37,991 bases of DNA from Monocercomonoides exilis PA203 (Eukaryota > Protista > Preaxostyla). The translations under genes were made by a program, and so were the position numbers. The notes beneath the pieces were generated by a model, which was not told where the DNA came from, did no database searches, and saw only the letters and a program-made list of their open reading frames with translations. Location: positions 1-37,991 of the forward strand of contig LSRY02000087.1 of NCBI GenBank assembly GCA_001643675.2. Reading direction: 5' to 3'. Positions within the stretch are counted from its first letter, which is position 1. Each line of letters starts with the position of its first letter. Positions 1,873-34,583 of the stretch are shown piece by piece.

Positions 1873-1874
<2 letters not shown>

Positions 1875-3905: not shown

Positions 3906-4500
3906 TATTTTTAAATATCACAAAACCTAAATGAACCATTACATTAAATTGAAGTCTTATGCATTGAATTATACATCAAAACAGATTTTGATACAAATAT
4001 AAAATCCTTATCACCTGGACACAATTTTTGTGTTCTCCTTTAAAAATTATCAAAAGGCTTTCATTTCTTATGTTGTGCAAACATATTCATTCTCGTTGAA
4101 TATTCACTTTTGGTTCAATTATCAAAAAGAAAAGCCTTTTTACATTCATTGTTAACCTTTTTTATTTTGAAAATGGGAAAAACAAGGACGTTTGTATTTG
4201 TTGATTATCTTCATTGATAAAATTTCCCCATTTTACCATGAACAGGATATACAATGAACAAAAATACGTCCAATCCATCCAGCTGGGGACGAAGAAGACG
4301 AAGAAGAAAAAGACAATGATGACTTTGTTGAGTGTGAAGAAGAAGATGGGGAAGAAGATTACAATGAAAAATGCTTCACATGCTTTCAGAGAATGCGTTA
4401 TTTTCTCAACAAGGAATGTATCAACTATCATTAATTTAAATTTGATGATCCTTTTTGAATGTTTGATGAAAATATAAATATTTCACCTGAATAATTGCTT
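3906..4500 (+). repeat. Outer, older part of the left palindrome arm (homologous to ~34340-35200 reverse complement)
   Basis: 3906-3993 aligns to 35113-35200 and 3991-4057 to ~34779-34846 at roughly 75-80% identity. About 4058-4470 is nearly identical to ~34365-34778. Confidence 0.85.
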
Positions 4501-4819
4501 CTTTTTCCATTTATCACATAATGCAGAATTCTTGCGTTTATCAAAAAATAAGGAATGTTCGAAACATTTTCAGCCTTTATTTCACAATCCGTATTTCATC
4601 TTTATTCCAAAAATATTGAAATATCAAAAATAGTGAAAAATTTTGGTAAATATAATGTGGATCACATCTCATGAAGCAAGAAAGTTTGAAACAAATATTT
4701 TTCACATATCAATATTTAATTGAACATAAAGGAATTTGTTTGAAAAAAAAAAGATTCAAAAAGAATGGGTTATCAAAAACCCAATATTGGAAAAACTTTT
4801 ATTTCTGTTTTAAGTTTCC

Positions 4820-7800: not shown

Positions 7801-10800
7801 GTGCGCTGACGCTCTCTTCATCGCGGGTGAGCGGCGATGCGGATGTGCTGTCTGTCCCGTTCTGTTTTGTGTGTGTGAGAAAGGGAAGATGCTGATGAGC
7901 AGTGTTGTTGTGGAGCATTTGTGCTTTTGGTGGAGCCGTTTGTGAGGTGCAGCGGAACGGAGTCTGAAACGGTGATGATGCAGGCAACGTTCGCTGACAC
8001 GACAAGCTGGGGAGAAGAAGGGTTGATTGTGCTTCGCGATGGCTCCACGGCAAAAATCAGCAAGAGTGCGTTTGAAAGCAGCAGCGGAAGCAAGCAGCCG
8101 ATGATTGTTGTGAACAAAGCCAGGAAGACCAATGTGAGCGAGACAAGCGTAGACTGCTCTCTTTCTGGTCAAGGAGATGGGTGTTTCCTTCGCGGAACGC
8201 TGGGAGTGGGGTGCGAAATGGTTGTAGATGGAGGAAACATGAGTGGGACATGCCCAAGAGGAAACGGGGGAATGCTGAGACTGGTGCTGGAAGGCGGAAG
8301 CAAGCTGCAGATTGGAAGAAGCATGGAGACGATTGTGAGCAAGTGCAAAGCAGTTTTTGCAGCAGGGAGTGGGGGATATGGAGGAGGGATGTATTTGGAG
8401 ACAAATAGCAGTGACGTGAATATGGGGCTGAATGCAGTGAAGTTTGATGGATGTCAAGCAGACAGGCATGGACACAATCTGTTTTTAACAGCCCCCAACT
8501 TCACAGCTTCTGTGACAAAAGCCACACTCGGATTTGTGGCTGACACCACAAATGAAGAGGAGCTTGAGGGATATGAAGGAGGAAACAGCACATATGCAAT
8601 CCCGTTGGTGCTGTATCTGCGTGACGACCCTGAGCCAGTTATGGTTGGTGGAGATAACAAAAAGATTTCGACAGATGTGGATATGCTGGACACGGGTGCG
8701 AAACGATGGACTTTGTGATGGCTCGGTGGGTGGAGGAAAACGGACTCAACGCATCAATATCAAACACTGTGCCGCTATACTCGGAGGCAAGTCTTGTCAG
8801 CGGAGTATTTGTGCTGAACGGCACATCAGTATATTCTCAAATAGACGTGTTCGAAAATGCTGCAAAGAAACAGGATGGGATGATAGAGACAAGCTGTGCG
8901 ACAACATTTACGGGACTGAAGATTACTGGGCCAGCGAGCTTGAACACGAGGTTTTATCTAATATGCACGAAAAGTGGAGTCTTGACATTGAGCTCGTGCG
9001 CTCTGAGTGTACGCTCGTCACTCACAGCTGCATATTCCATGATCGCCTGCACAGGAGGGCAGACAACGTTGAATGATGTGACCATCAGGAATGCTGTGTG
9101 TGCGTGTGGAGCCATGATTTGGATCACAGGAGAAGGAAGCTGCACCATGGATGAATGCACAATGATGAATGCAAAGGGTTCGGAAGCAACAGATGGATGC
9201 GTTGTCTATGCATCATCTGGCACTCTGGAAATAGGAAACACGACATTTTCAGAGGAAGGGGCAGATGACAGATCAGGCAGCGTGAGGCTGGCAGATAAGC
9301 TGGGAAAGTGGATGGGAGTGAGGAACTGCACGTTCAGAGGCTTGTCAAGGAACGGAGAAAAAGGATGTGTGCTGTTTGGGATGTTGGATGAAGGGATGGT
9401 GCTTGAGCTGAACGATGTGAACATGGAGAACTGCACTGTGAGTGGAGGAAGCGGAGGAGGATGCTTTGTGGAGTTGTCGAAGACAGCAAGACTTCGTGTC
9501 GGAGAGAGTGGGAATAGAATGCTGGCTGAAGGATGCCGAGCGCTGGCTGGCGAATGTGGCGGATTGAAGGGATTTGGAGGAGGAATGCTGGTGAAGTGCA
9601 TTGAAGAGGCAAGTGATATGATAATTGCGGGGGTGAAATTTGGAGAAGGGGAAAAAGCGAACATGGCTGACAAGGGAGGAAACAATGTGTTTGTTTCGTG
9701 TGTGAATTTATCAATGGTGGTGAATGAAGGCTCGTTCAACTTTGACTTTATGAAGAAAGTTGAAGAGTCGCCCAGGCTGTGGGATTTGATGGGGATGGAA
9801 AATGGAGCAAGAGAGAATCCGATTCCGCTTGTTGTGTTCTTTCGAGAAAGCGCAGGGAATGTGTTTGTTGGAGACAAAGGGTGCGATTATGTATTATGCG
9901 GGTTTGAGGATTATCCGTGCAGAGGAATTGTGCATGCTGCAGCACTGCGAAAAGGATCGGAAAACGTGGTGGTTACGCTTCTTGCAGACTTTGGGTTTTG
10001 CGATTCCATAATTCTGGATGCTCAAGAAATGACCATCAACACCCAAGGCAACAGCCACGAAAGAATGGTCCATGGAGAAGGAGAAGGAGAATCCGACTGG
10101 TTGATAGAGACCAAAAAGAACATCACTTTTGAAGATGTCTCATTTGGGATGCCGCCTTCATTTAACTACCAACGTGAAAGCTTTCTGAGGTGCAGCAAAG
10201 ACAAACTGGAGCTCAGAAGGTGTTTGGCGAAGGTTGAGGCAGACTCAAGGAGGATTGATTATTCATTTGTTAGTGTGGAAGGAGGGATGCTTGTGATGGA
10301 TGATTTTTCAGCGATGGAGTTGTGTGCTGTGCAACATGGGCTTGTGGATGGAAGAGGGCTGGACTCAAAAGTGGAGCTAAGTGGGGTGAAGTTTGAGGGT
10401 ATTTCTGTGGAAGGAGAAAGAGGAGTTGTGTGTGGGCAAAGCTGTGGATTGCTCAGCATGAATGATTCTTGGATGAATTCGTCTGCTCTTGGAGACAGCT
10501 GCTTGGTGTGGTTTTGCGGGTGCGCATCCGTTAACATGAAAGGGCTGAGCATCTGGAACGTGTCGAGAACAGCAGGGAGTGGAGGGGCATTCAGTGGAGA
10601 AATAGGAGAAGGGTGCAAGTGCGAGATCCGAGGGAGCACATTTGGCAATGTGAGTTGTGGGGAGCATGCTGGAAGGGGAGGGTGCGGAGCTGTGGAGGTG
10701 ATGAGAAATGGGAAGCTGATTATTGAGGGGTGCGTTTTTGAAAAGAATGGGGTGGATGAAGAAGCAGGGGTTTGGGGGAGGGTTGTTTGCTCGGTTTGTG

Positions 10801-13800
10801 GATGTGAGTGTAAAGTACAGCATGAAGCACAACACATTTGCAGAGAACAAAGCAAGCGTGGGGAAAGATGTGTATGTGATTTGCCCGCAGGCGAGAAAGA
10901 TGCTGTATCAGGAGTTGTGGGAAGGAACAGTCGAAGAGGATGATGAAAAAGAGCGGTTTTGGGTTTATGATGAGAGTTCTGGAGTGGTAATCAACACTTC
11001 GATATTAGTTATGCTTTTTCCGGCAGGCGAGGAGATTGTATTTGTTGATGGAACAGTGATAAATTCAGAGGGGGTGTGGGCACGAAGAAACACCATGTGG
11101 CGATGTGTTGCATGGGTTCAAAGCAATGAACGAAAATCAGACCACAATAAGGATTGTGTCGGGCACATTTTTGGGATCAGTTATTGATCGAGACTCATCG
11201 CTCGCAATTGAAGGGGCAAAGGCAATTCACCCAGAGCTGGAGATAAAACAAAGCGGGCAGCTATGTGTGTCTCATGAAAACATATCCCTTTCGCTTCGAG
11301 GCTTGACTTTCAGATTTGCAACAGAACTTTCGCCAGCATTAACTTCTTCACAATTATCTTCGGTATCTTCTTTTGAGTTGAATTCTGTCTTTGCTATCAG
11401 CTGCGGACGATGCGCAGTGACAGATTGTGCATTTGGAAGAGGAGGCGAAGGAGGAGATGAAGACCAATCAGAGGTGACAAGATGGCTGGTATATGAAACC
11501 GGAGGTGCAGTTGAGATGAGTTCTGTTCAGTTTGAAAGTGTTGATTTTTGCAATGAATGTGGGATTGGACTTTGCCTTGGTGGAGAAATGGTTTGCCAAA
11601 ACGTCACAATTTCCCACATTGCAACAGATGGCCCGAATATGTTTGAAAGCAGAGGCAATGCTCGGGTGGAATTCAGCATGATGAACGTGAGCCATGCAAG
11701 AGCAGAGAAAGGACGATTTGTCACTGTGAAGGAAGGGTCGAGCTTGATGATGGGCGAGGAGTGTGCGCTTGAGGGTTGTGGGCGAAGTTCAGTGAATGGG
11801 AGTTTTGCTTGCTGCGAAATGAGCAAGGAAGCAGAGCTGAAGATAGAATCTGGGGCAATGAGCCATTGGGCATGCGACAATGAGAAAGGTTATGGAGGAT
11901 GCCTGTTCGTCAAGCTGTGTGCCGGGTTTGGTGGAGATTTTTACTTCAAAAATATTCAGTTGAGTGAGAATGATGCCTTTGAGGGGGAAGGACATGTTTG
12001 TGGAATGTGTAGAACTAAATGCATCGGTGACACAAGAAAGGTTCAGGTTTGAGCTGGCAGAGTGGGAGCGACGGGAAGGCTGCTGATCTGAAGGGTATTG
12101 ATGCAACGCGCTTTCCCTCTCCAGTGGATTTGAGGCTGTTTCTTATTCAGGCGCACTGCATGCAGGCTGTTGTGTCCAGCGAAGGGTATGACACTTTGGG
12201 CTGCGGGGTGCTGATGCATCCCTGCCAGTCATTTTGGAGAGGCTATTGCAACACGCAGGCAGACGCAGATCCAAAGGAGCTGGCAATACAGGAGGGTGCA
12301 ACAGTCAGTCGCGGATACGATATGTCTTCATTTGTTGTTGCTTCGTTGCCAGCAGAAGAATACAGCAAACTGCACATTTCACATGACATCCAGGATGGGA
12401 TATCTGGTGCAGTGTTTTGGAATGCCAAGGCGCTGTTGTTCCGCACAATCAAATTCTCATTTCCCCCAACAGCATCATCTGCCGTTCGTTCGATGATTGC
12501 TTCGTCGTCTGCAAGCTCTTTGCTGTCGATTATCAACTGCTCCATATCCAAAGCGAGTGGCGCTGCAGTTCAATATGTGGCTGTATCAGTCACAGGGGCG
12601 AGCTTGTTATTGAAAGCAGTTCGTACACATCGTCTGGCGAGTATGCTTCTGCTCCCTTTTCTGTTCGTGGCACAATGTGTGCGATAAACAGCTCATTCAG
12701 CACGGCTCAAACGAGATCAAGCAAGGAAGGAGGGCTGATGCAAATCAAAACGAGTGGCGGTGATTCGGTAAAGATGGAGGGATGCACACTGGAAGGGTGT
12801 GCATGCACTGAAGAGAATGGGAAAGGGGGGCGCTTTGTATGTTGATGGGAAAGAAGCCGTTCAGTCTAATTGTTTGCTGCTGAAAAGTGTCAATTTTGCA
12901 GCGAATCACGCACAAATCGGGGAGCACATGTTTGTTGCGTGTAAAGACCTGAATGCCACAGTGACAAAGTCGAGCTTCATGTTTTCGTTGGATTTTGTCA
13001 AGGAAGATGACAATGGGCTGATGGGAAGCGATGCAGTGCATAATGAAACAACGCTTCTGAGGTTTCTTGTGCAGTACAAAGGAAGCACAGTGCACATTGC
13101 TCGAGCCGGGTATGACTTGTTGCGATGTGGAGGAGCAGAGGATCCGTGCAGGAGCTGGACTCACGGGGTGAAGCAATTTGAGTCAGAGTCCCCACAAAAA
13201 TAGTTGTGATCGATGGAGGCTGCAACTACAAGGAGAATGGGGTGCTTTCGGATTATGAAGTGAAGTCGATTGGGGAGGAAGAAGAGGAGCAATCAAGAGC
13301 TGAGCTTTGCGTCGTGCAGGGCGATGACGAACAACATGACGTGTGCATGCGAAATGCAGGGGTGCTTTGTTTTGAAAAGATCTCGTTTGTTGTGGCAGAG
13401 GGGTTTTCAAACGAGGAAAACGGGGTGATTGTCAGCGAAGATGGGAACTTGAGGTTGACGAGCTGCGAGGCTTGGATGAACGGCAGAGCTTTGCTGGAAA
13501 ATAGCGCTTCATTTGTCGTTGTGCTGAGAGGGGCTGTGCTGCTGGAAGGAATGACAGTGAGCCGCTCATCGTTTGGAAGAAGTTTGATGGAAATAGCGTC
13601 TCATGTGGATTGTGTGTTGGATTCTGTCAGTGCAGAATTGATAAATGTTGAAGAAGGATGCATAATTAGCATGAGAGATGACGACTCTGAGCAAATGAAC
13701 AGCAAAAACGCTGGAGCAGGGATTTCATTAAACAAGTGCTCATTCAAGAATATCACAAACAACGGAGAGAGCGGAAGCGTTGTGGTTGTTGGAGGAAGAG

Positions 13801-16800
13801 GCAGTGGAAGCAAACTTTGCATTAATTCGAGTATGCTTGAAATGTGCACAAGCAGCAATTCGCAGAAAGGAGGGGCAATTCTGTTTCGATTGAGCTCTGG
13901 CGGATGCTTGGACGTGAGGGGTTCGACGATTGGGCTGTGCAGCTGTTCGGCACAGAATGGGTGTGGAGGCGGCTTCTATGTTGAGGCTGTGCATGCAGGA
14001 AGCCTGAACATGCTTTTTGCTAATATCAAGTTCGACTCGAACATTGCGCATATCGGGAGGGATTTGTTTGTGGAGTGCAACAACATCAAAGAGCAGATCA
14101 ACGAGACGCAGTTCCAGTTTGATCTGAGAGAATCGAAGTACAACAGGCTGAATGCAATATTTGGAATAGACAGAGCAGAGTTGTGTGTGGAGGCAGTGAA
14201 TCTGATTGAGTTTATTGTGATATATCAGAATGACACGATCTTCACGAGCTCGGATGATGGATCAGCAAGTGAAGACAGCAAAAACTGTGGAACTCAGGCG
14301 CTTCCATGCTTGTCGGTTGGGTATGCTGTTGGCCATCTCACATATGACTTTGAAAGCCAGATTGTGGTTGTTGGAGAAGGGTTGATTGGAAAGGAAGTGG
14401 ACGTGGCAAATGTATCGATACGATCGCGGGGATCAGAGACTGCACTTCTGCGCATTGGCACACAACTGGAATGCACACGCCAGTATGTGGTGCTGTGTTC
14501 GGAGGCAGTTTTCTTCAGGGGGATTTCGTTTGTTGTTTGTGCAGAGAGCATGCGTGGTCATGGATGCTTTGTGGAGTGCAGCAGAGGCACAACACAAATG
14601 ACAAGGTGCTCGTTTCGAAGCGATGCAGAGATGGGAGATTCCACCAAGATAAATGCCATTTTGGTGCAAGTGGAGGCAAGGGGATGTCTGCAACTGGAAA
14701 ACACAACACTGAGACAGATATCGTCAGAATGTCCGCTGATAGCATGTGAAGGACAATCAACGCTGCGCTGCACTTCCCTAATCATGGAATCGCTTTTCTG
14801 TGCATGTGATGCGATTCTTGTAAAAGAATGCGAATTATTGGGCATGGAAAAAGTCGAGTGCCATGATGTTGTGTGCGGCAGTGGAGCGCTGTTTGCCTTT
14901 CAGGGAATAAATGCTGGTGAGAGGAGTGGAAACAGTGAAGAATACTCTCTTTCAATGGGCTCATTTAAAAATATATCAATCGAGGCAAGAAAGCAAACAC
15001 TTTTCTGTTTTACGCGCTTAACAAATCTGCGAATGCGAAACATCACTTTTAGCAGATGCTCGGCACTTGTGCAGAATGGCATGTTGCTATCTTCTGATAG
15101 ATGCCATGAAACAGAAATTGAATACTGCAGCTTTAGCGGGAAAGGAATGGACGACACCGTGGAGTCAAAGACGCCAAGAAGCGAGATATGCAAATGGAAT
15201 GGATCACTAGTTGCCCTGCAACAGTCTGAGACAATAATAAGAGGCACCACCATATCAGAATCGCCAATCGGGGGATTATTTGTGTCTGGAGGGAATGTGA
15301 TGATAGATCAAGGGGAGTTTCGGGACAACAATGCAAAGGTGAAAGGATATCCATCTGCACGAAGGAATATAGCATGCGCTGATCGTGGCATGCTGTCAAT
15401 CGCAAGCCTGAAAGGAGGAGACGGCATGTTGCCAAGCACATCCATGTGGATTGCAAATAGCAATTGTGTGCTTGGTGGAATTGCTTCAGAGCGAGCATCA
15501 TCATTTTTTATCCCTGTGCTAGAGTCGGTGAAGATGGAAAAAGGAGAAATTACAACAGAGCTCACATTCATCGGAAGGCTTCTTCTTCCATGCAATCTGA
15601 CAGTTCAGATAGCTTTTTCAATTGGAAGTGAGTCTCAAATAGAAAAGCAAAATATGAATGAGAGCGACTACAAATCTGAAACTGAGATTCACAGCTGGAT
15701 ACCTTCCACAAAAATAAATGGAGTATCGGAAGAGGTTGAAGTGTCAGTGTGCATTCTGTTTGGAGACGAGAGCATTCGGCGACCAACTGATTCTTTCATC
15801 CTGAAGAACAGGAGCGAGCAGAAGAGCTTTGGCGATGAGAAAATAACAGAAGGAGCACAAAGCCCAAATGCATCATGGCCAGTTATTGTTTGCATCGCAG
15901 TAGTAGTAATTCTTTTAATAACATTGATTATATTTATAGTCCGATGGAGAAAGCAAAAGAGAAGAACAGAAGAGCTGGAAGTGATTGTTGAAGACACAGT
16001 GAAGAAGGATCCGAAAGCGTTTGAGATGGTGACGATGGAGATGTCACCCGAGGAGCAGTGGAGGAGAGCTGAGAGGGAGGCAGAGAAGAAGAATGAAGAG
16101 AGGATAAAGAAGAGAGTGTATGAGAAAAGCTTGGGACATTCAGAGTCATCAGAGCATTTGTTGAGTGAGAGTGGCTCAACAGAATACATCTTGGGGAGAG
16201 ATTCAGACAAGATCCCTCAATGGATGCTTGAGAAGGTTGAAGATGAGGAAGAGACGAGGAAAAGAACACCATCGCCATCCATTTCATCCACCTCAACAAC
16301 AGACACTACAGACACAGACACAACATTTGTTCGAGGAGAGGATCTGTGTCCAACCACCTCATCGATGTCGAATCTGGTGGATGCAATGGCCTGTTCATCG
16401 CCACATGAGAAGCTCATTGTGGACTTGAGGGATTCGCTGTTCATGTTGCTTCATGGAAGGAATGAGAAGAAAGAGATGGCGATAGGCACTCTGCAGGAGC
16501 GGGAGGTCTCGGCTGCTCAGATCCTGTTCTGGGTGGCCAACCTTGCCCTCCACTCATTTGATGAAGAACAGGAATTGCCTTCTCTTGCCAACCTCAGCCC
16601 TCACATCGTGCTGTTTTCTGAGCACATGGTGATCTGCATTGCACTCCACTCCGACTGCTCCTCAGACTCAGACACTTCATCCACTTTTTCTTCCACCTCG
16701 ACAATTGTCACCTCTTCCTCTGATGTTTCTGTGAAGAGCGAGAGATTCTCAAAATCACCACCACCTTCGTCGGCCTTTGAGGATGAGGATGACAACCGGA

Positions 16801-17201
16801 AAGAGTGTCTGCGGTGGAAGGCGCCAGAGCTGCTGATGAACAAAGATCTGGGAGCCACAAAGAAGACAGTTGTGTTCTCGATTGGGATGATGCTGTGGGA
16901 GAGTCTGACGCTGGAGATCCCGTTTGGCGAGTATGAAGCAGAGGTGGCGGGGATGTGGCTGAAAGAAGGAAAGCGGCCGAAGACGGGAGGACTGGAAGGG
17001 AGCAGGCTGGAAGGGCTGGTGAAAGGGTGCTTTTCGCAAGAGGCGAGGGACAGGTGCACTCTGACAGATGTGAAGCGGGTGCTAATTGGGCTGTTCCCGG
17101 CCGGGACAGTCATGCTCACAGTGACCGATGCGATTGGGCTGGAGGAAGAATCAGGAAGCTACAGGAAATACAGCAGGTTCAGTGGGGAAGGAAGCAACTG
17201 A
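4820..17201 (+). CDS. Giant (~4100 aa reconstructed) type-I membrane protein with Cys/Gly-rich beta-helix-like (pectin-lyase/Pmp-like) ectodomain, TM helix and tyrosine-kinase-like pseudokinase tail; frameshifted in this sequence (copy 1)
   Basis: ATG 4820 begins the signal-peptide-like MLDKCLLISAFISISFQLAA. Overlapping ORFs at 4820, 5152, 5310, 6326, 6709, 7055, 7288, 7921, 8706, 10723, 11105, 12049, 12417, 12799 and 13206 chain into one protein by +/-1 shifts. It carries repeated GGA[LIV]/GGG motifs and D-x3-CG-x4-PC motifs, a TM at 15876-15941, RWKAPE...VFSIGMMLWE, and a TGA stop at 17201. Confidence 0.82.
13206..17201 (+). CDS. Uninterrupted C-terminal 1331 codons of copy 1 (last ectodomain modules, TM, Ser/Glu-rich linker, pseudokinase C-lobe)
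   Basis: 4-kb open frame. The listed start is not a real initiation site but follows a frameshift at ~13195; the mirror copy reads through this point. Confidence 0.9.
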   Translation: MIDGGCNYKENGVLSDYEVKSIGEEEEEQSRAELCVVQGDDEQHDVCMRNAGVLCFEKISFVVAEGFSNEENGVIVSEDGNLRLTSCEAWMNGRALLENSASFVVVLRGAVLLEGMTVSRSSFGRSLMEIASHVDCVLDSVSAELINVEEGCIISMRDDDSEQMNSKNAGAGISLNKCSFKNITNNGESGSVVVVGGRGSGSKLCINSSMLEMCTSSNSQKGGAILFRLSSGGCLDVRGSTIGLCSCSAQNGCGGGFYVEAVHAGSLNMLFANIKFDSNIAHIGRDLFVECNNIKEQINETQFQFDLRESKYNRLNAIFGIDRAELCVEAVNLIEFIVIYQNDTIFTSSDDGSASEDSKNCGTQALPCLSVGYAVGHLTYDFESQIVVVGEGLIGKEVDVANVSIRSRGSETALLRIGTQLECTRQYVVLCSEAVFFRGISFVVCAESMRGHGCFVECSRGTTQMTRCSFRSDAEMGDSTKINAILVQVEARGCLQLENTTLRQISSECPLIACEGQSTLRCTSLIMESLFCACDAILVKECELLGMEKVECHDVVCGSGALFAFQGINAGERSGNSEEYSLSMGSFKNISIEARKQTLFCFTRLTNLRMRNITFSRCSALVQNGMLLSSDRCHETEIEYCSFSGKGMDDTVESKTPRSEICKWNGSLVALQQSETIIRGTTISESPIGGLFVSGGNVMIDQGEFRDNNAKVKGYPSARRNIACADRGMLSIASLKGGDGMLPSTSMWIANSNCVLGGIASERASSFFIPVLESVKMEKGEITTELTFIGRLLLPCNLTVQIAFSIGSESQIEKQNMNESDYKSETEIHSWIPSTKINGVSEEVEVSVCILFGDESIRRPTDSFILKNRSEQKSFGDEKITEGAQSPNASWPVIVCIAVVVILLITLIIFIVRWRKQKRRTEELEVIVEDTVKKDPKAFEMVTMEMSPEEQWRRAEREAEKKNEERIKKRVYEKSLGHSESSEHLLSESGSTEYILGRDSDKIPQWMLEKVEDEEETRKRTPSPSISSTSTTDTTDTDTTFVRGEDLCPTTSSMSNLVDAMACSSPHEKLIVDLRDSLFMLLHGRNEKKEMAIGTLQEREVSAAQILFWVANLALHSFDEEQELPSLANLSPHIVLFSEHMVICIALHSDCSSDSDTSSTFSSTSTIVTSSSDVSVKSERFSKSPPPSSAFEDEDDNRKECLRWKAPELLMNKDLGATKKTVVFSIGMMLWESLTLEIPFGEYEAEVAGMWLKEGKRPKTGGLEGSRLEGLVKGCFSQEARDRCTLTDVKRVLIGLFPAGTVMLTVTDAIGLEEESGSYRKYSRFSGEGSN

Positions 17202-18101
17202 GAAGGCAGAAATTAAAGTGAGCGTGATTTTGACGGATGAGCATAACAATGTTTGAAAATGGAATGACAAAGAAAAGAGAAACGGAAAAAGAAGAGGCTA
17301 GTGGAATTGGTCACACAAGATTTCACAGATAGAAGATCCATTGAAGAAGCATTGGAAGCAAATGAATGGATGGATTGCAGCCGCATTTTGTGTGACGAAT
17401 ATGGTGAGATGCCCGTCATCACGCACAATTGCGATATCTGCTTGAATTTATCTTGCTCTCTTTTCTTTTCTTTCTTTTATTTTTTCCTTTATATTTTTTG
17501 TTTGTGAAGAAAGGATTTCTTCTACGTGCCTTTTCTTCTATTGGCTGATTCATGGCATTTGCATGCACGTGCCACATACACTCTGCATTTCAGCACATGT
17601 CTATTTTTGAGGCATTGGCTTTCTTCCAAGTTGAATTATGTTATTAATAGTATTTTTCATTTCAAAGAAATTCACCAAAAAAATGATTCAAAATCGGGAG
17701 AAAAAATCAATCAAGAAAGCACGATTATGATTCAAAAAATTCTTTGTTTTAACTAAATATAAATTCTATTGTTGTTTCAATTTAAAATCAAATAATAATT
17801 TTTTATTTGTTAATTCAATACTTGAATTTATGATGATATTAGAAGCAATATTCCACACTTTTTTGGATGTTATTTAATTGTTTGACTGTTAGCACATAAA
17901 CAAAAGTGTTTCTGAAAAATCACTGAAAAAAAAAATTCTTATTCATTTTAATAAAATTCAACAAACCAATTTGTGATTATATTTTTTATTGAAAAAACAA
18001 GATAGTTATTTGTATTAAAGGTAAGAGTGAACTCAACCGACACCCTAAAATTAACATCCATAATCATTTTCCCAACATATTAAATGATAAATATTTAATA
18101 T

Positions 18102-18358
18102 GGGTGATTATTTTTGAAATCATAACTTTTTTCGGGATGCTGATTATTTTGATAATTCATTGTCAAAGAGAATCAATTAATCTTTGAAATGAAAAAATCA
18201 TTTCAATTGTGTCAAAAGCCAATATTTGATGAAAATGGAATACAAAGATTGTCTTTATAGGATTTATCACTTTCCTGTGTCCATTTATCAATATTCAAAA
18301 CGATATTATCAAATCGAATTTTTTGTTCAAAAAAATATGATTTCAAAAATAATCATCC
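18102..18358. mobile_element. MITE (family A), 257 bp, ATAT target-site duplication
   Basis: ATAT|GGGTGATTATTTTTGAAATCATA...TATGATTTCAAAAATAATCATCC|ATAT; the TIRs match at 22/23. Confidence 0.85.
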
Positions 18359-19293
18359 ATATATTCTAATTTTATTTAGAAAAATAACTATATTCAAATA
18401 TTAAAAATCATCTCTTTCTTATCATTTATTTACAAAAATAATTAGATTTTCTAGGAAAACCCTAACTTTTTTTTACCTTTTCTTAACCATAGCAAATAAA
18501 ACGCGAAAACAATTAGTCGTATAACACTAAAAAATCTTCAATTCAGAGATTGTTTAAGAAAAGAAATAACATAAATATGAATGTAATGAGTGTGATCAAA
18601 ATAGGTGTCGATTGATGCCACTTTTGCCGTGTTAAAAAAATTATTATTAAAATAATTTTTAGTCTGTTCGCGTGTGAAAAAGTTTTCAAAAATAGCAAGC
18701 AAAAGTGTTTGTGCACATAATTTTTCGTTGGCACTTCATCAAAAGAAATAATTGTTTATCATCGAAACTTTATTATTTTAATTTCCGAGAGCGTATTGCA
18801 TAAAAGAAACGGAATAAAAAAATTCACACAAAATTTAGTGAGATTGCGTTCATAATTATTTCAATCTGAAAATCAATATGAATATATTTCACTTGATTCT
18901 GATTTTTTTTAAAAGAGAAAAATATATCATTTTTTTTTAATATCACATATTTGTCAGATTTTAAAATTCACTCAACCAACATCGTTGAATTCCCAACAAA
19001 TATTTCAAAATTTGCATTCAAAATTCAAAGTTCTTGAACCATGATAATATCAATAAATTCAGAAAGAAATGATAAATATCAGCATTATAGGAACTTAAAA
19101 ATTTTATGGTAAATTATGAATATGACAAACGATTATCAACACTTTTCTCAAAATGATTATTTTCTTTTGTTTTTTTGAATGTTTTTCGAATGAATCAATT
19201 CTCTTAATTGCTATTTATTTCTTTCCTTTCAAAAATGAAATGAATTTCACCTGTGTGACTGTTTCAAAAATCAAACCATTTTTACTGAAAATT

Positions 19294-19545
19294 GGGTTAT
19301 TCTTTTTGAAAAGTCGCAAATATTCAATTAATTATGATTAATATAGAAGCCTCCATTTTAATTAGAAATGATTTATGATGAAAGCAAGCACCAAGTTAAA
19401 AACAGAATAATCTCGTTTTGTGAACATGTAATTGAAAGAATAGTTTTGTTTTTTGACAGATCAGTTCTCAACATTGATCAAAATGGAGGTATCTTTATTA
19501 ATCATAATTAATTGAATATTTGCGACTTTTCAAAAAGAATAACCC
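19294..19545. mobile_element. MITE (family B), 252 bp, on the symmetry axis of the giant palindrome; AATT flanks
   Basis: AATT|GGGTTATTCTTTTTGAAAAGTCGCAAATATTCAATT matches the right TIR of the 920-1144 element (GGGTGATTC-TTTTGAAAAGTCGCAAATGTTTAATT) at about 32/36. The TIR is perfect over 19294-19343, continues with 3 mismatches to 19359/19480, and encloses a 120-bp non-palindromic core at 19360-19479. Confidence 0.82.
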
Positions 19546-20469
19546 AATTTTCAGTAAAAATGGTTTGATTTTTGAAACAGTCACACAGGTGAAATTCATT
19601 TCATTTTTGAAAGGAAAGAAATAAATAGCAATTAAGAGAATTGATTCATTCGAAAAACATTCAAAAAAACAAAAGAAAATAATCATTTTGAGAAAAGTGT
19701 TGATAATCGTTTGTCATATTCATAATTTACCATAAAATTTTTAAGTTCCTATAATGCTGATATTTATCATTTCTTTCTGAATTTATTGATATTATCATGG
19801 TTCAAGAACTTTGAATTTTGAATGCAAATTTTGAAATATTTGTTGGGAATTCAACGATGTTGGTTGAGTGAATTTTAAAATCTGACAAATATGTGATATT
19901 AAAAAAATGATATATTTTTCTCTTTAAAAAATCAGAATCAAGTGAAATATATTCATATTGATTTTCAGATTGAAATAATTATGAACGCAATCTCACTAAA
20001 TTTTGTGTGAATTTTTTTATTCCGTTTCTTTATGCAATACGCTCTCGGAAATTAAAATAATAAAGTTTCGATGATAAACAATTATTTCTTTTGATGAAGT
20101 GCCAACGAAAAATTATGTGCACAAACACTTTTGCTTGCTATTTTTGAAAACTTTTCACACGCGAACAGACTAAAAATTATTTTAATAATAATTTTTTAAC
20201 ACGGCAAAAGTGGCATCAATCGACACCTATTTTGATCACACTCATTACATTCATATTTATGTTATTTCTTTTCTTAAACAATCTCTGAATTGAAGATTTT
20301 TAGTGTTATACGACTAATTGTTTTCGCGTTTTATTTGCTATGGTTAAGAAAAGGTAAAAAAGTTAGGGTTTTCCTAGAAAATCTAATTATTTTTGTAAAT
20401 AAATGATAAGAAAGAGATGATTTTTAATATTTGAATATAGTTATTTTTCTAAATAAAATTAGAATATAT

Positions 20470-20721
20470 GGATGATTATTTTTGAAATCATATTTTTTGA
20501 ACAAAAAATTCGATTTGATAATATCGTTTTGAATATTGATAAATGGACACAGGAAAGTGATAAATCCTATAAAGACAATCTTTGTATTCCATTTTCATCA
20601 AATATTGGCTTTTGACACAATTGAAATGATTTTTCATTTCAAAGATTAATTGATTCTCTTGACAATGAATTATCAAAATAATCAGCATCCCGAAAAAGTT
20701 ATGATTTCAAAATAATCACCC
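20470..20721. mobile_element. MITE (family A), mirror copy of 18102-18358
   Basis: ATAT|GGATGATTATTTTTGAAATCATA...TATGATTTCAAAATAATCACCC|ATAT. Confidence 0.85.
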
Positions 20722-21611
20722 ATATTAAATATTTATCATTTAATATGTTGGGAAAATGATTATGGATGTTAATTTTAGGGTGTCGGTTGAGTTCACTCTT
20801 ACCTTTAATACAAATAACTATCTTGTTTTTTCAATAAAAAATATAATCACAAATTGGTTTGTTGAATTTTATTAAAATGAATAAGAATTTTTTTCAGTGA
20901 TTTTTCAGAAACACTTTTGTTTATGTGCTAACAGTCAAACAATTAAATAACATCCAAAAAGTGTGGAATATTGCTTCTAATATCATCATAAATTCAAGTA
21001 TTGAATTAACAAATAAAAATTATTATTTGATTTTAAATTGAAACAACAATAGAATTTATATTTAGTTAAAACAAAGAATTTTTTGAATCATAATCGTGCT
21101 TTCTTGATTGATTTTTCTCCCGATTTTGAATCATTTTTTGGTGAATTTCTTTGAAATGAAAAATACTATTAATAACATAATTCAACTTGGAAGAAAGCCA
21201 ATGCCTCAAAATAGACATGTGCTGAAATGCAGAGTGTATGTGGCACGTGCATGCAAATGCCATGAATCAGCCAATAGAAGAAAAGGCACGTAGAAGAAAT
21301 CCTTTCTTCACAAACAAAAATATAAAGGAAAAATAAAAGAAAGAAAAGAAAAGAGAGCAAGATAAATTCAAGCAGATATCGCAATTGTGCGTGATGACGG
21401 GCATCTCACCATATTCGTCACACAAAATGCGGCTGCAATCCATCCATTCATTTGCTTCCAATGCTTCTTCAATGGATCTTCTATCTGTGAAATCTTGTGT
21501 GACCAATTCCACTAGCCTCTTCTTTTTCCGTTTCTCTTTTCTTTGTCATTCCATTTTCAAACATTGTTATGCTCATCCGTCAAAATCACGCTCACTTTAA
21601 TTTCTGCCTTC

Positions 21612-24600
21612 TCAGTTGCTTCCTTCCCCACTGAACCTGCTGTATTTCCTGTAGCTTCCTGATTCTTCCTCCAGCCCAATCGCATCGGTCACTGTGAGCA
21701 TGACTGTCCCGGCCGGGAACAGCCCAATTAGCACCCGCTTCACATCTGTCAGAGTGCACCTGTCCCTCGCCTCTTGCGAAAAGCACCCTTTCACCAGCCC
21801 TTCCAGCCTGCTCCCTTCCAGTCCTCCCGTCTTCGGCCGCTTTCCTTCTTTCAGCCACATCCCCGCCACCTCTGCTTCATACTCGCCAAACGGGATCTCC
21901 AGCGTCAGACTCTCCCACAGCATCATCCCAATCGAGAACACAACTGTCTTCTTTGTGGCTCCCAGATCTTTGTTCATCAGCAGCTCTGGCGCCTTCCACC
22001 GCAGACACTCTTTCCGGTTGTCATCCTCATCCTCAAAGGCCGACGAAGGTGGTGGTGATTTTGAGAATCTCTCGCTCTTCACAGAAACATCAGAGGAAGA
22101 GGTGACAATTGTCGAGGTGGAAGAAAAAGTGGATGAAGTGTCTGAGTCTGAGGAGCAGTCGGAGTGGAGTGCAATGCAGATCACCATGTGCTCAGAAAAC
22201 AGCACGATGTGAGGGCTGAGGTTGGCAAGAGAAGGCAATTCCTGTTCTTCATCAAATGAGTGGAGGGCAAGGTTGGCCACCCAGAACAGGATCTGAGCAG
22301 CCGAGACCTCCCGCTCCTGCAGAGTGCCTATCGCCATCTCTTTCTTCTCATTCCTTCCATGAAGCAACATGAACAGCGAATCCCTCAAGTCCACAATGAG
22401 CTTCTCATGTGGCGATGAACAGGCCATTGCATCCACCAGATTCGACATCGATGAGGTGGTTGGACACAGATCCTCTCCTCGAACAAATGTTGTGTCTGTG
22501 TCTGTAGTGTCTGTTGTTGAGGTGGATGAAATGGATGGCGATGGTGTTCTTTTCCTCGTCTCTTCCTCATCTTCAACCTTCTCAAGCATCCATTGAGGGA
22601 TCTTGTCTGAATCTCTCCCCAAGATGTATTCTGTTGAGCCACTCTCACTCAACAAATGCTCTGATGACTCTGAATGTCCCAAGCTTTTCTCATACACTCT
22701 CTTCTTTATCCTCTCTTCATTCTTCTTCTCTGCCTCCCTCTCAGCTCTCCTCCACTGCTCCTCGGGTGACATCTCCATCGTCACCATCTCAAACGCTTTC
22801 GGATCCTTCTTCACTGTGTCTTCAACAATCACTTCCAGCTCTTCTGTTCTTCTCTTTGCTTTCCGGACTATAAATATAATCAATGTTATTAAAAGAATTA
22901 CTACTACTGCGATGCAAACAATAACTGGCCATGATGCATTTGGGCTTTGTGCTCCTTCTGTTATTTTCTCATCGCCAAAGCTCTTCTGCTCGCTCCTGTT
23001 CTTCAGGATGAAAGAATCAGTTGGTCGCCGAATGCTCTCGTCTCCAAACAGAATGCACACTGACACTTCAACCTCTTCCGATACTCCATTTATTTTTGTG
23101 GAAGGTATCCAGCTGTGAATCTCAGTTTCAGATTTGTAGTCGCTCTCATTCATATTTTGCTTTTCTATTTGAGACTCACTTCCAATTGAAAAAGCTATCT
23201 GAACTGTCAGATTGCATGGAAGAAGAAGCCTTCCGATGAATGTGAGCTCTGTTGTAATTTCTCCTTTTTCCATCTTCACCGACTCTAGCACAGGGATAAA
23301 AAATGATGATGCTCGCTCTGAAGCAATTCCACCAAGCACACAATTGCTATTTGCAATCCACATGGATGTGCTTGGCAACATGCCGTCTCCTCCTTTCAGG
23401 CTTGCGATTGACAGCATGCCACGATCAGCGCATGCTATATTCCTTCGTGCAGATGGATATCCTTTCACCTTTGCATTGTTGTCCCGAAACTCCCCTTGAT
23501 CTATCATCACATTCCCTCCAGACACAAATAATCCCCCGATTGGCGATTCTGATATGGTGGTGCCTCTTATTATTGTCTCAGACTGTTGCAGGGCAACTAG
23601 TGATCCATTCCATTTGCATATCTCGCTTCTTGGCGTCTTTGACTCCACGGTGTCGTCCATTCCTTTCCCGCTAAAGCTGCAGTATTCAATTTCTGTTTCA
23701 TGGCATCTATCAGAAGATAGCAACATGCCATTCTGCACAAGTGCCGAGCATCTGCTAAAAGTGATGTTTCGCATTCGCAGATTTGTTAAGCGCGTAAAAC
23801 AGAAAAGTGTTTGCTTTCTTGCCTCGATTGATATATTTTTAAATGAGCCCATTGAAAGAGAGTATTCTTCACTGTTTCCACTCCTCTCACCAGCATTTAT
23901 TCCCTGAAAGGCAAACAGCGCTCCACTGCCGCACACAACATCATGGCACTCGACTTTTTCCATGCCCAATAATTCGCATTCTTTTACAAGAATCGCATCA
24001 CATGCACAGAAAAGCGATTCCATGATTAGGGAAGTGCAGCGCAGCGTTGATTGTCCTTCACATGCTATCAGCGGACATTCTGACGATATCTGTCTCAGTG
24101 TTGTGTTTTCCAGTTGCAGACATCCCCTTGCCTCCACTTGCACCAAAATGGCATTTATCTTGGTGGAATCTCCCATCTCTGCATCGCTTCGAAACGAGCA
24201 CCTTGTCATTTGTGTTGTGCCTCTGCTGCACTCCACAAAGCATCCATGACCACGCATGCTCTCTGCACAAACAACAAACGAAATCCCCCTGAAGAAAACT
24301 GCCTCCGAACACAGCACCACATACTGGCGTGTGCATTCCAGTTGTGTGCCAATGCGCAGAAGTGCAGTCTCTGATCCCCGCGATCGTATCGATACATTTG
24401 CCACGTCCACTTCCTTTCCAATCAACCCTTCTCCAACAACCACAATCTGGCTTTCAAAGTCATATGTGAGATGGCCAACAGCATACCCAACCGACAAGCA
24501 TGGAAGCGCCTGAGTTCCACAGTTTTTGCTGTCTTCACTTGCTGATCCATCATCCGAGCTCGTGAAGATCGTGTCATTCTGATATATCACAATAAACTCA

Positions 24601-25973
24601 ATCAGATTCACTGCCTCCACACACAACTCTGCTCTGTCTATTCCAAATATTGCATTCAGCCTGTTGTACTTCGATTCTCTCAGATCAAACTGGAACTGCG
24701 TCTCGTTGATCTGCTCTTTGATGTTGTTGCACTCCACAAACAAATCCCTCCCGATATGCGCAATGTTCGAGTCGAACTTGATATTAGCAAAAAGCATGTT
24801 CAGGCTTCCTGCATGCACAGCCTCAACATAGAAGCCGCCTCCACACCCATTCTGTGCCGAACAGCTGCACAGCCCAATCGTCGAACCCCTCACGTCCAAG
24901 CATCCGCCAGAGCTCAATCGAAACAGAATTGCCCCTCCTTTCTGCGAATTGCTGCTTGTGCACATTTCAAGCATACTCGAATTAATGCAAAGTTTGCTTC
25001 CACTGCCTCTTCCTCCAACAACCACAACGCTTCCGCTCTCTCCGTTGTTTGTGATATTCTTGAATGAGCACTTGTTTAATGAAATCCCTGCTCCAGCGTT
25101 TTTGCTGTTCATTTGCTCAGAGTCGTCATCTCTCATGCTAATTATGCATCCTTCTTCAACATTTATCAATTCTGCACTGACAGAATCCAACACACAATCC
25201 ACATGAGACGCTATTTCCATCAAACTTCTTCCAAACGATGAGCGGCTCACTGTCATTCCTTCCAGCAGCACAGCCCCTCTCAGCACAACGACAAATGAAG
25301 CGCTATTTTCCAGCAAAGCTCTGCCGTTCATCCAAGCCTCGCAGCTCGTCAACCTCAAGTTCCCATCTTCGCTGACAATCACCCCGTTTTCCTCGTTTGA
25401 AAACCCCTCTGCCACAACAAACGAGATCTTTTCAAAACAAAGCACCCCTGCATTTCGCATGCACACGTCATGTTGTTCGTCATCGCCCTGCACGACGCAA
25501 AGCTCAGCTCTTGATTGCTCCTCTTCTTCCTCCCCAATCGACTTCACTTCATAATCCGAAAGCACCCCATTCTCCTTGTAGTTGCAGCCTCCATCGATCA
25601 CAACTATTTTTGTGGGGGACTCTGACTCAAATTGCTTCACCCCGTGAGTCCAGCTCCTGCACGGATCCTCTGCTCCTCCACATCGCAACAAGTCATACCC
25701 GGCTCGAGCAATGTGCACTGTGCTTCCTTTGTACTGCACAAGAAACCTCAGAAGCGTTGTTTCATTATGCACTGCATCGCTTCCCATCAGCCCATTGTCA
25801 TCTTCCTTGACAAAATCCAACGAAAACATGAAGCTCGACTTTGTCACTGTGGCATTCAGGTCTTTACACGCAACAAACATGTGCTCCCCGATTTGTGCGT
25901 GATTCGCTGCAAAATTGACACTTTTCAGCAGCAAACAATTAGACTGAACGGCTTCTTTCCCATCAACATACAA
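21612..25973 (-). CDS. Uninterrupted C-terminal 1453 codons of copy 2
   Basis: 4.36-kb open frame. It matches copy 1 except just after the TM helix (VRKAKRR vs VRWRKQKRR, net 6-bp deletion). Confidence 0.9.
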   Translation of the reverse strand: MYVDGKEAVQSNCLLLKSVNFAANHAQIGEHMFVACKDLNATVTKSSFMFSLDFVKEDDNGLMGSDAVHNETTLLRFLVQYKGSTVHIARAGYDLLRCGGAEDPCRSWTHGVKQFESESPTKIVVIDGGCNYKENGVLSDYEVKSIGEEEEEQSRAELCVVQGDDEQHDVCMRNAGVLCFEKISFVVAEGFSNEENGVIVSEDGNLRLTSCEAWMNGRALLENSASFVVVLRGAVLLEGMTVSRSSFGRSLMEIASHVDCVLDSVSAELINVEEGCIISMRDDDSEQMNSKNAGAGISLNKCSFKNITNNGESGSVVVVGGRGSGSKLCINSSMLEMCTSSNSQKGGAILFRLSSGGCLDVRGSTIGLCSCSAQNGCGGGFYVEAVHAGSLNMLFANIKFDSNIAHIGRDLFVECNNIKEQINETQFQFDLRESKYNRLNAIFGIDRAELCVEAVNLIEFIVIYQNDTIFTSSDDGSASEDSKNCGTQALPCLSVGYAVGHLTYDFESQIVVVGEGLIGKEVDVANVSIRSRGSETALLRIGTQLECTRQYVVLCSEAVFFRGISFVVCAESMRGHGCFVECSRGTTQMTRCSFRSDAEMGDSTKINAILVQVEARGCLQLENTTLRQISSECPLIACEGQSTLRCTSLIMESLFCACDAILVKECELLGMEKVECHDVVCGSGALFAFQGINAGERSGNSEEYSLSMGSFKNISIEARKQTLFCFTRLTNLRMRNITFSRCSALVQNGMLLSSDRCHETEIEYCSFSGKGMDDTVESKTPRSEICKWNGSLVALQQSETIIRGTTISESPIGGLFVSGGNVMIDQGEFRDNNAKVKGYPSARRNIACADRGMLSIASLKGGDGMLPSTSMWIANSNCVLGGIASERASSFFIPVLESVKMEKGEITTELTFIGRLLLPCNLTVQIAFSIGSESQIEKQNMNESDYKSETEIHSWIPSTKINGVSEEVEVSVCILFGDESIRRPTDSFILKNRSEQKSFGDEKITEGAQSPNASWPVIVCIAVVVILLITLIIFIVRKAKRRTEELEVIVEDTVKKDPKAFEMVTMEMSPEEQWRRAEREAEKKNEERIKKRVYEKSLGHSESSEHLLSESGSTEYILGRDSDKIPQWMLEKVEDEEETRKRTPSPSISSTSTTDTTDTDTTFVRGEDLCPTTSSMSNLVDAMACSSPHEKLIVDLRDSLFMLLHGRNEKKEMAIGTLQEREVSAAQILFWVANLALHSFDEEQELPSLANLSPHIVLFSEHMVICIALHSDCSSDSDTSSTFSSTSTIVTSSSDVSVKSERFSKSPPPSSAFEDEDDNRKECLRWKAPELLMNKDLGATKKTVVFSIGMMLWESLTLEIPFGEYEAEVAGMWLKEGKRPKTGGLEGSRLEGLVKGCFSQEARDRCTLTDVKRVLIGLFPAGTVMLTVTDAIGLEEESGSYRKYSRFSGEGSN

Positions 25974-28900
25974 AGCGCCCCTTTCCCATTCTCTTCAGTG
26001 CATGCACACCCTTCCAGTGTGCATCCCTCCATCTTTACCGAATCACCGCCACTCGTTTTGATTTGCATCAGCCCTCCTTCCTTGCTTGATCTCGTTTGAG
26101 CCGTGCTGAATGAGCTGTTTATCGCACACATTGTGCCACGAACAGAAAAGGGAGCAGAAGCATACTCGCCAGACGATGTGTACGAACTGCTTTCAATAAC
26201 AAGCTCGCCCCCTGTGACTGATACAGCCACATATTGAACTGCAGCGCCACTCGCTTTGGATATGGAGCAGTTGATAATCGACAGCAAAGAGCTTGCAGAC
26301 GACGAAGCAATCATCGAACGAACGGCAGATGATGCTGTTGGGGAAATGAGAATTTGATTGTGCGGAACAACAGCGCCTTGGCATTCCAAAACACTGCACC
26401 AGATATCCCATCCTGGATGTCATGTGAAATGTGCAGTTTGCTGTATTCTTCTGCTGGCAACGAAGCAACAACAAATGAAGACATATCGTATCCGCGACTG
26501 ACTGTTGCACCCTCCTGTATTGCCAGCTCCTTTGGATCTGCGTCTGCCTGCGTGTTGCAATAGCCTCTCCAAAATGACTGGCAGGGATGCATCAGCACCC
26601 CGCAGCCCAAAGTGTCATACCCTTCGCTGGACACAACAGCCTGCATGCAGTGCGCCTGAATAAGAAACAGCCTCAAATCCACTGGAGAGGGAAAGCGCGT
26701 TGCATCAATACCCTTCAGATCAGCAGCCTTCCCGTCGCTCCCACTTGCCAGCTCAAACCTGAACCTTTCTTGTGTCACCGATGCATTTAGTTCTACACAT
26801 TCCACAAACATGTCCTTCCCTCAAAGGCATCATTCTCACTCAACTGAATATTTTTGAAGTAAAAATCTCCACCAAACCCGGCACACAGCTTGACGAACAG
26901 GCATCCTCCATAACCTTTCTCATTGTCGCATGCCCAATGGCTCATTGCCCCAGATTCTATCTTCAGCTCTGCTTCCTTGCTCATTTCGCAGCAAGCAAAA
27001 CTCCCATTCACTGAACTTCGCCCACAACCCTCAAGCGCACACTCCTCGCCCATCATCAAGCTCGACCCTTCCTTCACAGTGACAAATCGTCCTTTCTCTG
27101 CTCTTGCATGGCTCACGTTCATCATGCTGAATTCCACCCGAGCATTGCCTCTGCTTTCAAACATATTCGGGCCATCTGTTGCAATGTGGGAAATTGTGAC
27201 GTTTTGGCAAACCATTTCTCCACCAAGGCAAAGTCCAATCCCACATTCATTGCAAAAATCAACACTTTCAAACTGAACAGAACTCATCTCAACTGCACCT
27301 CCGGTTTCATATACCAGCCATCTTGTCACCTCTGATTGGTCTTCATCTCCTCCTTCGCCTCCTCTTCCAAATGCACAATCTGTCACTGCGCATCGTCCGC
27401 AGCTGATAGCAAAGACAGAATTCAACTCAAAAGAAGATACCGAAGATAATTGTGAAGAAGTTAATGCTGGCGAAAGTTCTGTTGCAAATCTGAAAGTCAA
27501 GCCTCGAAGCGAAAGGGATATGTTTTCATGAGACACACATAGCTGCCCGCTTTGTTTTATCTCCAGCTCTGGGTGAATTGCCTTTGCCCCTTCAATTGCG
27601 AGCGATGAGTCTCGATCAATAACTGATCCCAAAAATGTGCCCGACACAATCCTTATTGTGGTCTGATTTTCGTTCATTGCTTTGAACCCATGCAACACAT
27701 CGCCACATGGTGTTTCTTCGTGCCCACACCCCTCTGAATTTATCACTGTTCCATCAACAAATACAATCTCCTCGCCTGCCGGAAAAAGCATAACTAATAT
27801 CGAAGTGTTGATTACCACTCCAGAACTCTCATCATAAACCCAAAACCGCTCTTTTTCATCATCCTCTTCGACTGTTCCTTCCCACAACTCCTGATACAGC
27901 ATCTTTCTCGCCTGCGGGCAAATCACATACACATCTTTCCCCACGCTTGCTTTGTTCTCTGCAAATGTGTTGTGCTTCATGCTGTACTTTACACTCACAT
28001 CCACAAACCGAGCAAACAACCCTCCCCCAAACCCTGCTTCTTCATCCACCCCATTCTTTTCAAAAACGCACCCTCAATAATCAGCTTCCCATTTCTCATC
28101 ACCTCCACAGCTCCGCACCCTCCCCTTCCAGCATGCTCCCCACAACTCACATTGCCAAATGTGCTCCCTCGGATCTCGCACTTGCACCCTTCTCCTATTT
28201 CTCCACTGAATGCCCCTCCACTCCCTGCTGTTCTCGACACGTTCCAGATGCTCAGCCCTTTCATGTTAACGGATGCGCACCCGCAAAACCACACCAAGCA
28301 GCTGTCTCCAAGAGCAGACGAATTCATCCAAGAATCATTCATGCTGAGCAATCCACAGCTTTGCCCACACACAACTCCTCTTTCTCCTTCCACAGAAATA
28401 CCCTCAAACTTCACCCCACTTAGCTCCACTTTTGAGTCCAGCCCTCTTCCATCCACAAGCCCATGTTGCACAGCACACAACTCCATCGCTGAAAAATCAT
28501 CCATCACAAGCATCCCTCCTTCCACACTAACAAATGAATAATCAATCCTCCTTGAGTCTGCCTCAACCTTCGCCAAACACCTTCTGAGCTCCAGTTTGTC
28601 TTTGCTGCACCTCAGAAAGCTTTCACGTTGGTAGTTAAATGAAGGCGGCATCCCAAATGAGACATCTTCAAAAGTGATGTTCTTTTTGGTCTCTATCAAC
28701 CAGTCGGATTCTCCTTCTCCTTCTCCATGGACCATTCTTTCGTGGCTGTTGCCTTGGGTGTTGATGGTCATTTCTTGAGCATCCAGAATTATGGAATCGC
28801 AAAACCCAAAGTCTGCAAGAAGCGTAACCACCACGTTTTCCGATCCTTTTCGCAGTGCTGCAGCATGCACAATTCCTCTGCACGGATAATCCTCAAACCC

Positions 28901-33983: not shown

Positions 33984-34403
33984 GGAAACTTAAAACAGAA
34001 ATTAAAGTTTTTTTCAAAATTGGGTTTTTGATAACCCATTCTTTTTGAATCTTTATGTATTATGACAAATTCATTTTCTGTTCCATAGCTCATTAAGAAT
34101 GTGAATTATCTTTTTTCTAATTCAGTGCAATTAATCATTTTTTTAAACTGACTTATGATTGATCTTACATTTGTATGATTATCATTTTAATGGAAATGCA
34201 AATAAAATCCATTTGTTTATTTAATGTGGTTGTTTTCTTTCATTTTAGGGAAATAAATTAATTTTTAATATGAAAAAGAAATAAAGATTTTGGCAATCTA
34301 ATATTTCAAGTGATTGTTGAATTTTGTAACGATAAACGAACATTATTCTGGGGGAATTTTTATAATTTTCATCAAACATTCAAAAAGGATCATCAAATTT
34401 AAA

Positions 34404-34583
34404 TTAATGATAGTTGATACATTCCTTGTTGAGAAAATAACGCATTCTCTGAAAGCATGTGAAGCATTTTTCATTGTAATCTTCTTCCCCATCTTCTTCT
34501 TCACACTCAACAAAGTCATCATTGTCTTTTTCTTCTTCGTCTTCTTCGTCCCCAGCTAGATGAATTGGACATATTTTGTTCAT
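34404..34583 (-). other. Short acidic ORF (59 aa, MNKICPIHLAGDEEDEEEKDNDDFVECEEEDGEEDYNEKCFTCFQRMRYFLNKECINYH), possible small gene or exon fragment
   Basis: Manual translation; GAA/GAC-rich coding-like composition inside AT-rich DNA. The left-arm copy (~4254-4434) has one extra A near the start. Confidence 0.3.

Follow-up and report, generated by a model that had tools for sequence, protein, structure and literature searches.

Fold-back at inverted repeats is known chiefly from induced breaks and from cancer amplicons. In experiments, inverted repeats of 42-229 bp lying beside a break yield palindromes, the described cases being a 42-bp repeat at an HO break in yeast and 79- and 229-bp repeats at an I-SceI break in CHO cells (PMC7999016). 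In ODIRA, as described for yeast SUL1, three copies arise, seeded by interrupted repeats of 5-6 bp with loops of 40-80 bp (PMC4689423, PMC10766186), and the junctions retain the seeding repeat (PMC10766186). The palindromes of mammalian sex chromosomes, which undergo gene conversion between their arms, carry gene pairs on arms that are more than 99% alike, with divergence between paralogous palindromes (PMC3723533, 10.1101/800185). Among metamonads, Giardia muris bears identical inverted pairs of surface-protein (VSP) genes, head-to-head or tail-to-tail, whose spacers hold NEK, ankyrin and zinc-finger genes and pseudogenes, and no TIR element (PMC7641422).

Here, I describe a gene-bearing palindrome of the gut protist Monocercomonoides exilis, likewise a metamonad, that centres on a MITE. 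It occupies most of the window, namely the entire 37,991-bp contig C88 of an 82,301,135-bp, 101-contig assembly (Table 1), and is probably a naturally occurring variant of palindrome formation seeded by inverted repeats, a repair outcome already known. Like the fold-back products of yeast and CHO cells, it is a large palindrome on an inverted repeat, here probably pre-existing, whose loop is kept as the spacer. Those products are induced and dicentric, whereas this palindrome is natural, has become fixed and lies interstitially, and its probable seed is the TIR pair of a transposon. With ODIRA it has in common a junction that keeps the interrupted repeat, here the probable seed, yet it comprises two copies instead of three, with a 66-bp repeat and a 120-bp loop; ODIRA is marked by an inverted triplication whose two junctions carry short repeats, and this was not found, there being two arms and decayed outer strata, with at most one small hairpin at the outer ends. 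It resembles the mammalian palindromes in its arm identity, in the divergence of paralogous copies and in its gene pair, but differs from them in that its spacer is 120 bp long and lies within a MITE, and in its protist host. A word search of the assembly paper (PMC8767320) gave no mention of palindromes or inverted repeats, and a literature search, most subscription journals being outside its scope, returned no paper on MITE-centred large palindromes; such a gene palindrome is apparently undescribed for M. exilis in the literature searched. That it is real and under concerted evolution is well supported. The structure is fixed and natural, and one genome offers both a candidate 'before' state, in paralogue C, and the 'after' state twice, in palindromes A and B. 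This allows a direct test of how gene-bearing palindromes originate, and it hints at how the large receptor-kinase-like family of this organism adds copies.

Table 1. Features of the window (palindrome A) and of its two paralogous loci; positions are those of the window unless a contig is given.
Feature	Position	Strand	Basis
Left flank, equals C40:848,695 onward	1..4718	+	
Dispersed family member, 240-bp subfamily, ATAT target, off any axis	920..1144	.	
MITE-like insertion, left outer end	3568-3819		
Outermost stratum, 85% to 35121-35200	3906..3985	+	self-BLAST
Older outer stratum, 95.5% to 34342-34846	3991..4495	+	self-BLAST
Left arm, 14.6 kb	4719..19293	+	self-alignment
Receptor gene, about 3,960 codons	5310..17201	+	
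Second MITE, related GGGTGATT family, inside arm	18098..18362 (mirror ~20466-20725)	.	
AATT, left target-site copy	19290..19293	.	
Axis MITE, 252 bp; non-autonomous, with TIRs and a Sola1-like target	19294..19545	.	
Left TIR, 66 bp, outer 50 bp same as right TIR	19294..19359	+	
Unique loop, 120 bp, the true spacer of the palindrome	19360..19479	.	
Right TIR, 66 bp, mismatches at 19490, 19491, 19495	19480..19545	-	
AATT, right; target-site copy or mirror of the left one, indistinguishable; AAAT in paralogue C	19546..19549	.	
Right arm, with the bulk of the contig's homopolymer deletion errors	19546..34086	-	arm comparison, short-read contigs
Mirror receptor-gene copy, tail-to-tail	21612..33492	-	
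Right flank, equals C28 up to 32,461	34087..37991	+	
Older outer stratum, mate of 3991-4495	34342..34846	-	self-BLAST
MITE-like dispersed repeat between the right strata, interrupting the right outer stratum alone	34847..35112		
Outermost stratum, mate of 3906-3985	35121..35200	-	self-BLAST
Palindrome B, mid-contig, arms 99.88% alike, MITE on axis	C40:707,220-735,371		
Paralogue C, non-palindromic	C40:485,011-488,775		

A palindrome of about 30 kb with 14.6-kb arms had been proposed in a first-pass annotation of the window, and self-BLAST returns it as one inverted alignment (4719-34086, 99.24% over 29.4 kb). The description of its centre was borne out as well: a 252-bp element stands as spacer with AATT on both sides, its TIRs are perfect over the outer 50 bp and differ in the inner 16 bp at three positions (51, 55 and 56 of 66), 120 bp between them are unique, and taking out the MITE with one AATT leaves a perfect spacer-less palindrome. 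This last result is uninformative on the order of events, for mirror copying of a flank ending in the self-complementary AATT would look identical. The three mismatches look real, since a variant short-read contig covers only part of the depth at 19490, 19491 and 19495, the remainder agreeing with the reference; over 19314-19459 a short-read contig shows no difference. Short, non-coding and flanked by its 66-bp TIRs, the element is a MITE by structure, folds into a hairpin of -67 kcal/mol (z = -14.9), and has the geometry of a seeded palindrome, the repeat lying exactly on the axis with its loop as the spacer.

The family to which it belongs is dispersed in high copy: an assembly search that allowed one mismatch to the consensus found 783 termini, against 0 in the control, and the family has about 390 or more copies, the 252-bp subfamily being confined to 3 loci. 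A 4-bp AWWT target is duplicated perfectly in 9 of 11 dispersed members (eight ATAT/ATAT, two of which are one duplicated site, and one AAAT/AAAT), two being imperfect; a one-base target mismatch, as at paralogue C (below), also occurs in a dispersed copy (L012). None of these 11 copies has mirror-symmetric flanks (0.23-0.42). The 4-bp AWWT target is a hallmark of Sola1 (PMC3845634, citing Bao et al. 2009), and target, G-starting TIRs and a length of ~250 bp are common to the axis MITE and to the Sola1 non-autonomous elements of that source; its TIR sequence is unlike that of the insect families, and the element may be called no more than Sola1-like. The suggested match of its termini to those of the MITE at 920-1144 holds; that copy belongs to another subfamily. 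The short left TIR of that copy in C88 is probably an assembly error, the same site being complete (240 bp) in C40. As to the second MITE within the arm, the segment that includes it (18019-18635, ~616 bp) is present in A and C and absent from both arms of B.

All three copies of the 252-bp MITE, in palindromes A (the window) and B and in paralogue C, sit at the same site, ~2.1 kb downstream of paralogous receptor genes, and hence descend from one insertion. A and C are alike over the kinase tail, 3' flank and whole MITE, and the likeness ends exactly at the right end of the MITE. Beyond the right TIR, C has AAAT and then a microsatellite of AAAAAT units, a further TIR element and the 5' part of a family gene in tandem. 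Its target copies read AATT/AAAT, and the flanks of its MITE have a mirror identity of 0.45, where A and B reach 1.0. Of the receptor gene, A and C have only the tail in common (15802-19293 with C40:485011-488522), C having another ectodomain. An empty, pre-insertion site was not found in the assembly, where the 3' flank is present in A, B and C only, and the right flank of C is therefore not proven ancestral.

Evolution of the arms has been concerted: when all four are aligned, 480 sites separate A from B and 3 separate left from right arms, those 3 at the outer end, which implies a single origin of A and B and concerted evolution since. This signature of arm-to-arm conversion, on which the first-pass annotation is silent, explains the present identity of the arms. 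At positions 40-41, both TIRs of C read CC and those of B read CC/TT, whereas both TIRs of A read TA, so that copying in A extended into them. All three loci have mosaic tails, with 0 of 300 differences in some windows and more than 40 in others, a patchiness which suggests ectopic conversion and tail swapping. Ordering the three loci by the MITE itself was attempted and abandoned, the pattern being star-like (14, 17 and 14 differences at 231 sites; 6-7% divergence).

The MITE probably seeded the inverted duplication through fold-back at its TIRs. Two histories had been offered at the outset, nucleation by the TIRs and insertion into the apex of a perfect palindrome that was thereby stabilised; paralogue C, with the same insertion and an unrelated right flank, speaks for the former and against the latter, the order as such being unproven. 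The MITE-first order is favoured because C can be read as the pre-duplication state at the price of one base change in a target copy. A single MITE would have inserted at AATT ~2.1 kb downstream of a receptor gene then presumably in single copy. Breakage, or stalling of a fork, at the right TIR or just beyond it would have exposed single-stranded DNA, the right TIR annealing to the left one and priming outward synthesis along the left flank, either by fold-back or by a leading-to-lagging template switch. The backward copy would have grown to at least 15.4 kb by the time a second switch restored the link to the chromosome, so that the MITE loop stayed as spacer and a mirror of the left flank supplanted the old right flank. 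Block duplication of the palindrome would later have given A and B, in each of which copying from one arm to the other would have kept the pair near-identical; in A such copying would have extended 41 bp or more into the TIRs. Metamonads have no Ku and DNA-PKcs (PMC8516963), an absence that may favour fold-back repair. Against a MITE-first order stand the mosaic tails, through which the tail of C could derive from a palindrome; the nearly equidistant MITE copies, which give no order; and the fact that, among the five palindromes examined, two and perhaps a third can do without a TIR element.

The outer ends bear on the first of the competing histories. Beyond the near-perfect arms, strata of 95% and 85% identity indicate that the duplication once extended at least to 3906/35200, and near-perfect arms are consequently no sign of a very recent event. 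Such strata also fit an older tail-to-tail pair with an ordinary spacer, in one 3' flank of which the MITE later inserted; fold-back at the TIRs would then have deleted the spacer and rejoined the other arm by homology, the MITE setting the axis and not creating the second gene. The palindromes on C8 and C10, with spacers made of diverged 3' flanks, are the precursor that such re-centring would expect. It is nevertheless unlikely, given that C has the same insertion followed by a head-to-tail gene and no second arm, that the MITE copies, with 6-7% divergence of their own, are at least as old as the 95% stratum, and that the genes beyond the strata have no tblastn match to each other.

A rearrangement driven by transposase, through alternative or aborted transposition, may be regarded as quite improbable, whether as the builder of the inverted duplication or as the agent that cut the arm of C at the element end. 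Alternative transposition of maize Ac/Ds yields inverted duplications (10.1101/2020.01.07.897926), C meets its right flank exactly where the element ends, and a GGGT..ACCC hairpin with a 12-bp TIR match lies at the outer arm end where the right arm of B leaves homology; yet the distal junctions have neither an intact element end nor a target duplication, and a 12-bp match is marginal in AT-rich DNA.

Insertion of the MITE into the apex of an existing spacer-less palindrome, which it would have stabilised and of which C would afterwards have lost the second arm, is very improbable. The apex AATT does suit an AWWT target, and restoring the empty site yields a perfect palindrome, but a single arm offers 426 AWWT sites, so that a strike at the apex requires special targeting, and the arm loss in C must end precisely at the TIR; it is on these two counts that palindrome-first is the costlier order. 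Moreover, long spacer-less palindromes are unstable (PMC7999016, PMC10766186), and a second, unrelated element family (on C80, below) would have to share the preference for an apex.

The 29.4-kb palindrome is very probably a real structure, because its two unlike flanks run on into two large contigs: positions 1-5200 align with C40:848,695-854,002 and 33,600-37,991 with C28:28,055-32,461. C40 terminates ~900 bp beyond the same axis MITE and C28 opens with 13.7 kb of the left arm; one locus assembled three times with unlike flanks on its two sides is not the product of a simple fold-back read. For ~11 kb from the centre outward the arms differ by short indels alone, nearly all of them homopolymer deletions of the right arm, and short-read contigs put back right-arm bases at several sites (19900, 19925, 20028, 20151 and 20887). 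Word depth in one short-read run, a weak measure and not a copy number, is 122 in the flank common to all copies against 26-31 in single loops, nearer to the five copies expected if the palindromes are real than to the three expected otherwise. No contig spanning both arms was found among the short-read (Logan) contigs. The assembly reads came from a nanopore ligation-kit library of genomic DNA with no amplification step described, and were processed with Canu, Nanopolish and Pilon (PMC8767320). An artefact of nanopore fold-back reads or of a misjoin at the TIRs, to which the small and redundant contig, the poorly read second arm and the loop orientation unlike that of C40 and C28 might point, is already largely refuted and hardly credible in view of the flanks, the thrice-assembled apex, the mid-contig palindrome B, that library, the word depth (weak as it is), the outer strata with substitutions and an insertion on one side only, and the description of second-arm read errors as a mark of true inverted duplicates (PMC7229812).

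Whether the route is general was a further claim of the first-pass annotation, and it stands in part. Six predicted centres were taken, and four proved to be near-perfect inverted duplications. At C80:1,365,701 a palindrome of at least 10 kb (L031:4120-5880), whose arms carry a 735-aa ORF without Pfam match, centres on a different dispersed TIR element of 673 bp, matching positions 66-738 of the query with its midpoint on the axis. At C8:1,498,990 and C10:1,446,213, with spacers of 385 and 721 bp, the centres resemble the 3' flanks of paralogues and hold no high-copy repeat family; at C10:1,383,064 the spacer is 4.4 kb and no TIR element was found locally. Two of five independent palindromes are hence element-centred, by two families, and by a rough estimate on this small, non-random sample such exact centring is far above chance. 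The expected enrichment of GGGT(G/T)ATT-type elements at centres is not visible: none of the four other centres, a small sample, carries the family, and none of the 11 dispersed copies acts as a palindrome axis. The midpoints of seven convergent kinase-motif pairs, a weak test, had no exact TIR among the matches listed. The enrichment that a dedicated MITE-seeded amplification system would call for was not seen in this small sample, and the palindrome is more probably the outcome of a recurring repair accident that duplicates the neighbours of a hairpin element. It is possible, if doubtful, that in this protist, which lacks NHEJ, MITE hairpins of several families are a main, recurrent source of inverted gene duplications and keep re-priming long tracts of copying from the apex; if so, transposon remnants would create receptor gene pairs and drive both their homogenisation and the swapping of their tails.

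The receptor gene encodes, in order, a signal-peptide-like start, a beta-helix ectodomain, a transmembrane segment and a degenerate tyrosine-kinase-like domain. Pfam searches, run on separate ORF pieces and not on a joined gene model, gave Beta_helix in two upstream pieces and a partial PK_Tyr_Ser-Thr past the transmembrane segment. The gene resembles the tyrosine-kinase-like family, the largest in the M. exilis genome (PMC6759080), and the assembly contains 468 exact occurrences of a 19-mer taken from its kinase region. By eye, the kinase-like domain has no canonical HRD motif and is thus probably a pseudokinase. The locus was assembled three times with different reading-frame breaks, and breaks of this kind in palindrome arms are not to be taken as pseudogenes.

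At the outer ends, 4496-4718 and 34087-34341 do not correspond: the left side has an unrelated 224-bp segment, while the 256 bp of the right are common to the right arm of A and the left arm of B, which points to a replacement within the left arm of A. At 4767-4782 (mirror near 34022-34037) a small GGGT..ACCC hairpin precedes 12 bp that match the MITE TIR exactly, and the right arm of B loses homology just past its counterpart; this may be a seed of the second junction, or chance. A far older symmetry beyond the strata was considered and rejected, the genes there having no homology to each other by tblastn. The gene beyond the left outer stratum is a DDE_1 remnant; at 1877-3558 lies a decayed multi-copy element (at least 40 copies) whose minus strand encodes part of a DDE_1 transposase (Pfam E 1.6e-07 for the C40 copy). 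On the right, 35738-37390 (minus strand) holds a 550-aa ORF with no strong Pfam match and no close DNA paralogue found.

The redundant C88 appears to bridge C40 (869 kb) and C28 (1.19 Mb), which can probably be joined through its palindrome. The MITE loop is in plus orientation in C88 (19360-19479) and in minus orientation in C40:868078-868328 and C28:13768-14009, reflecting either assembly ambiguity or a genuine flip-flop through arm crossover; as a proof of crossover it was dropped, for it differs among assemblies of the same locus. On C80, a third MITE appears inserted in one TIR of the 673-bp element and is now mirrored in both. Symmetric opposite-strand pairs of repeat matches mark further candidate palindromes at C58:200046-201841, C14:2590025-2591075, C43:304389-305366 and C32:446978-448611.
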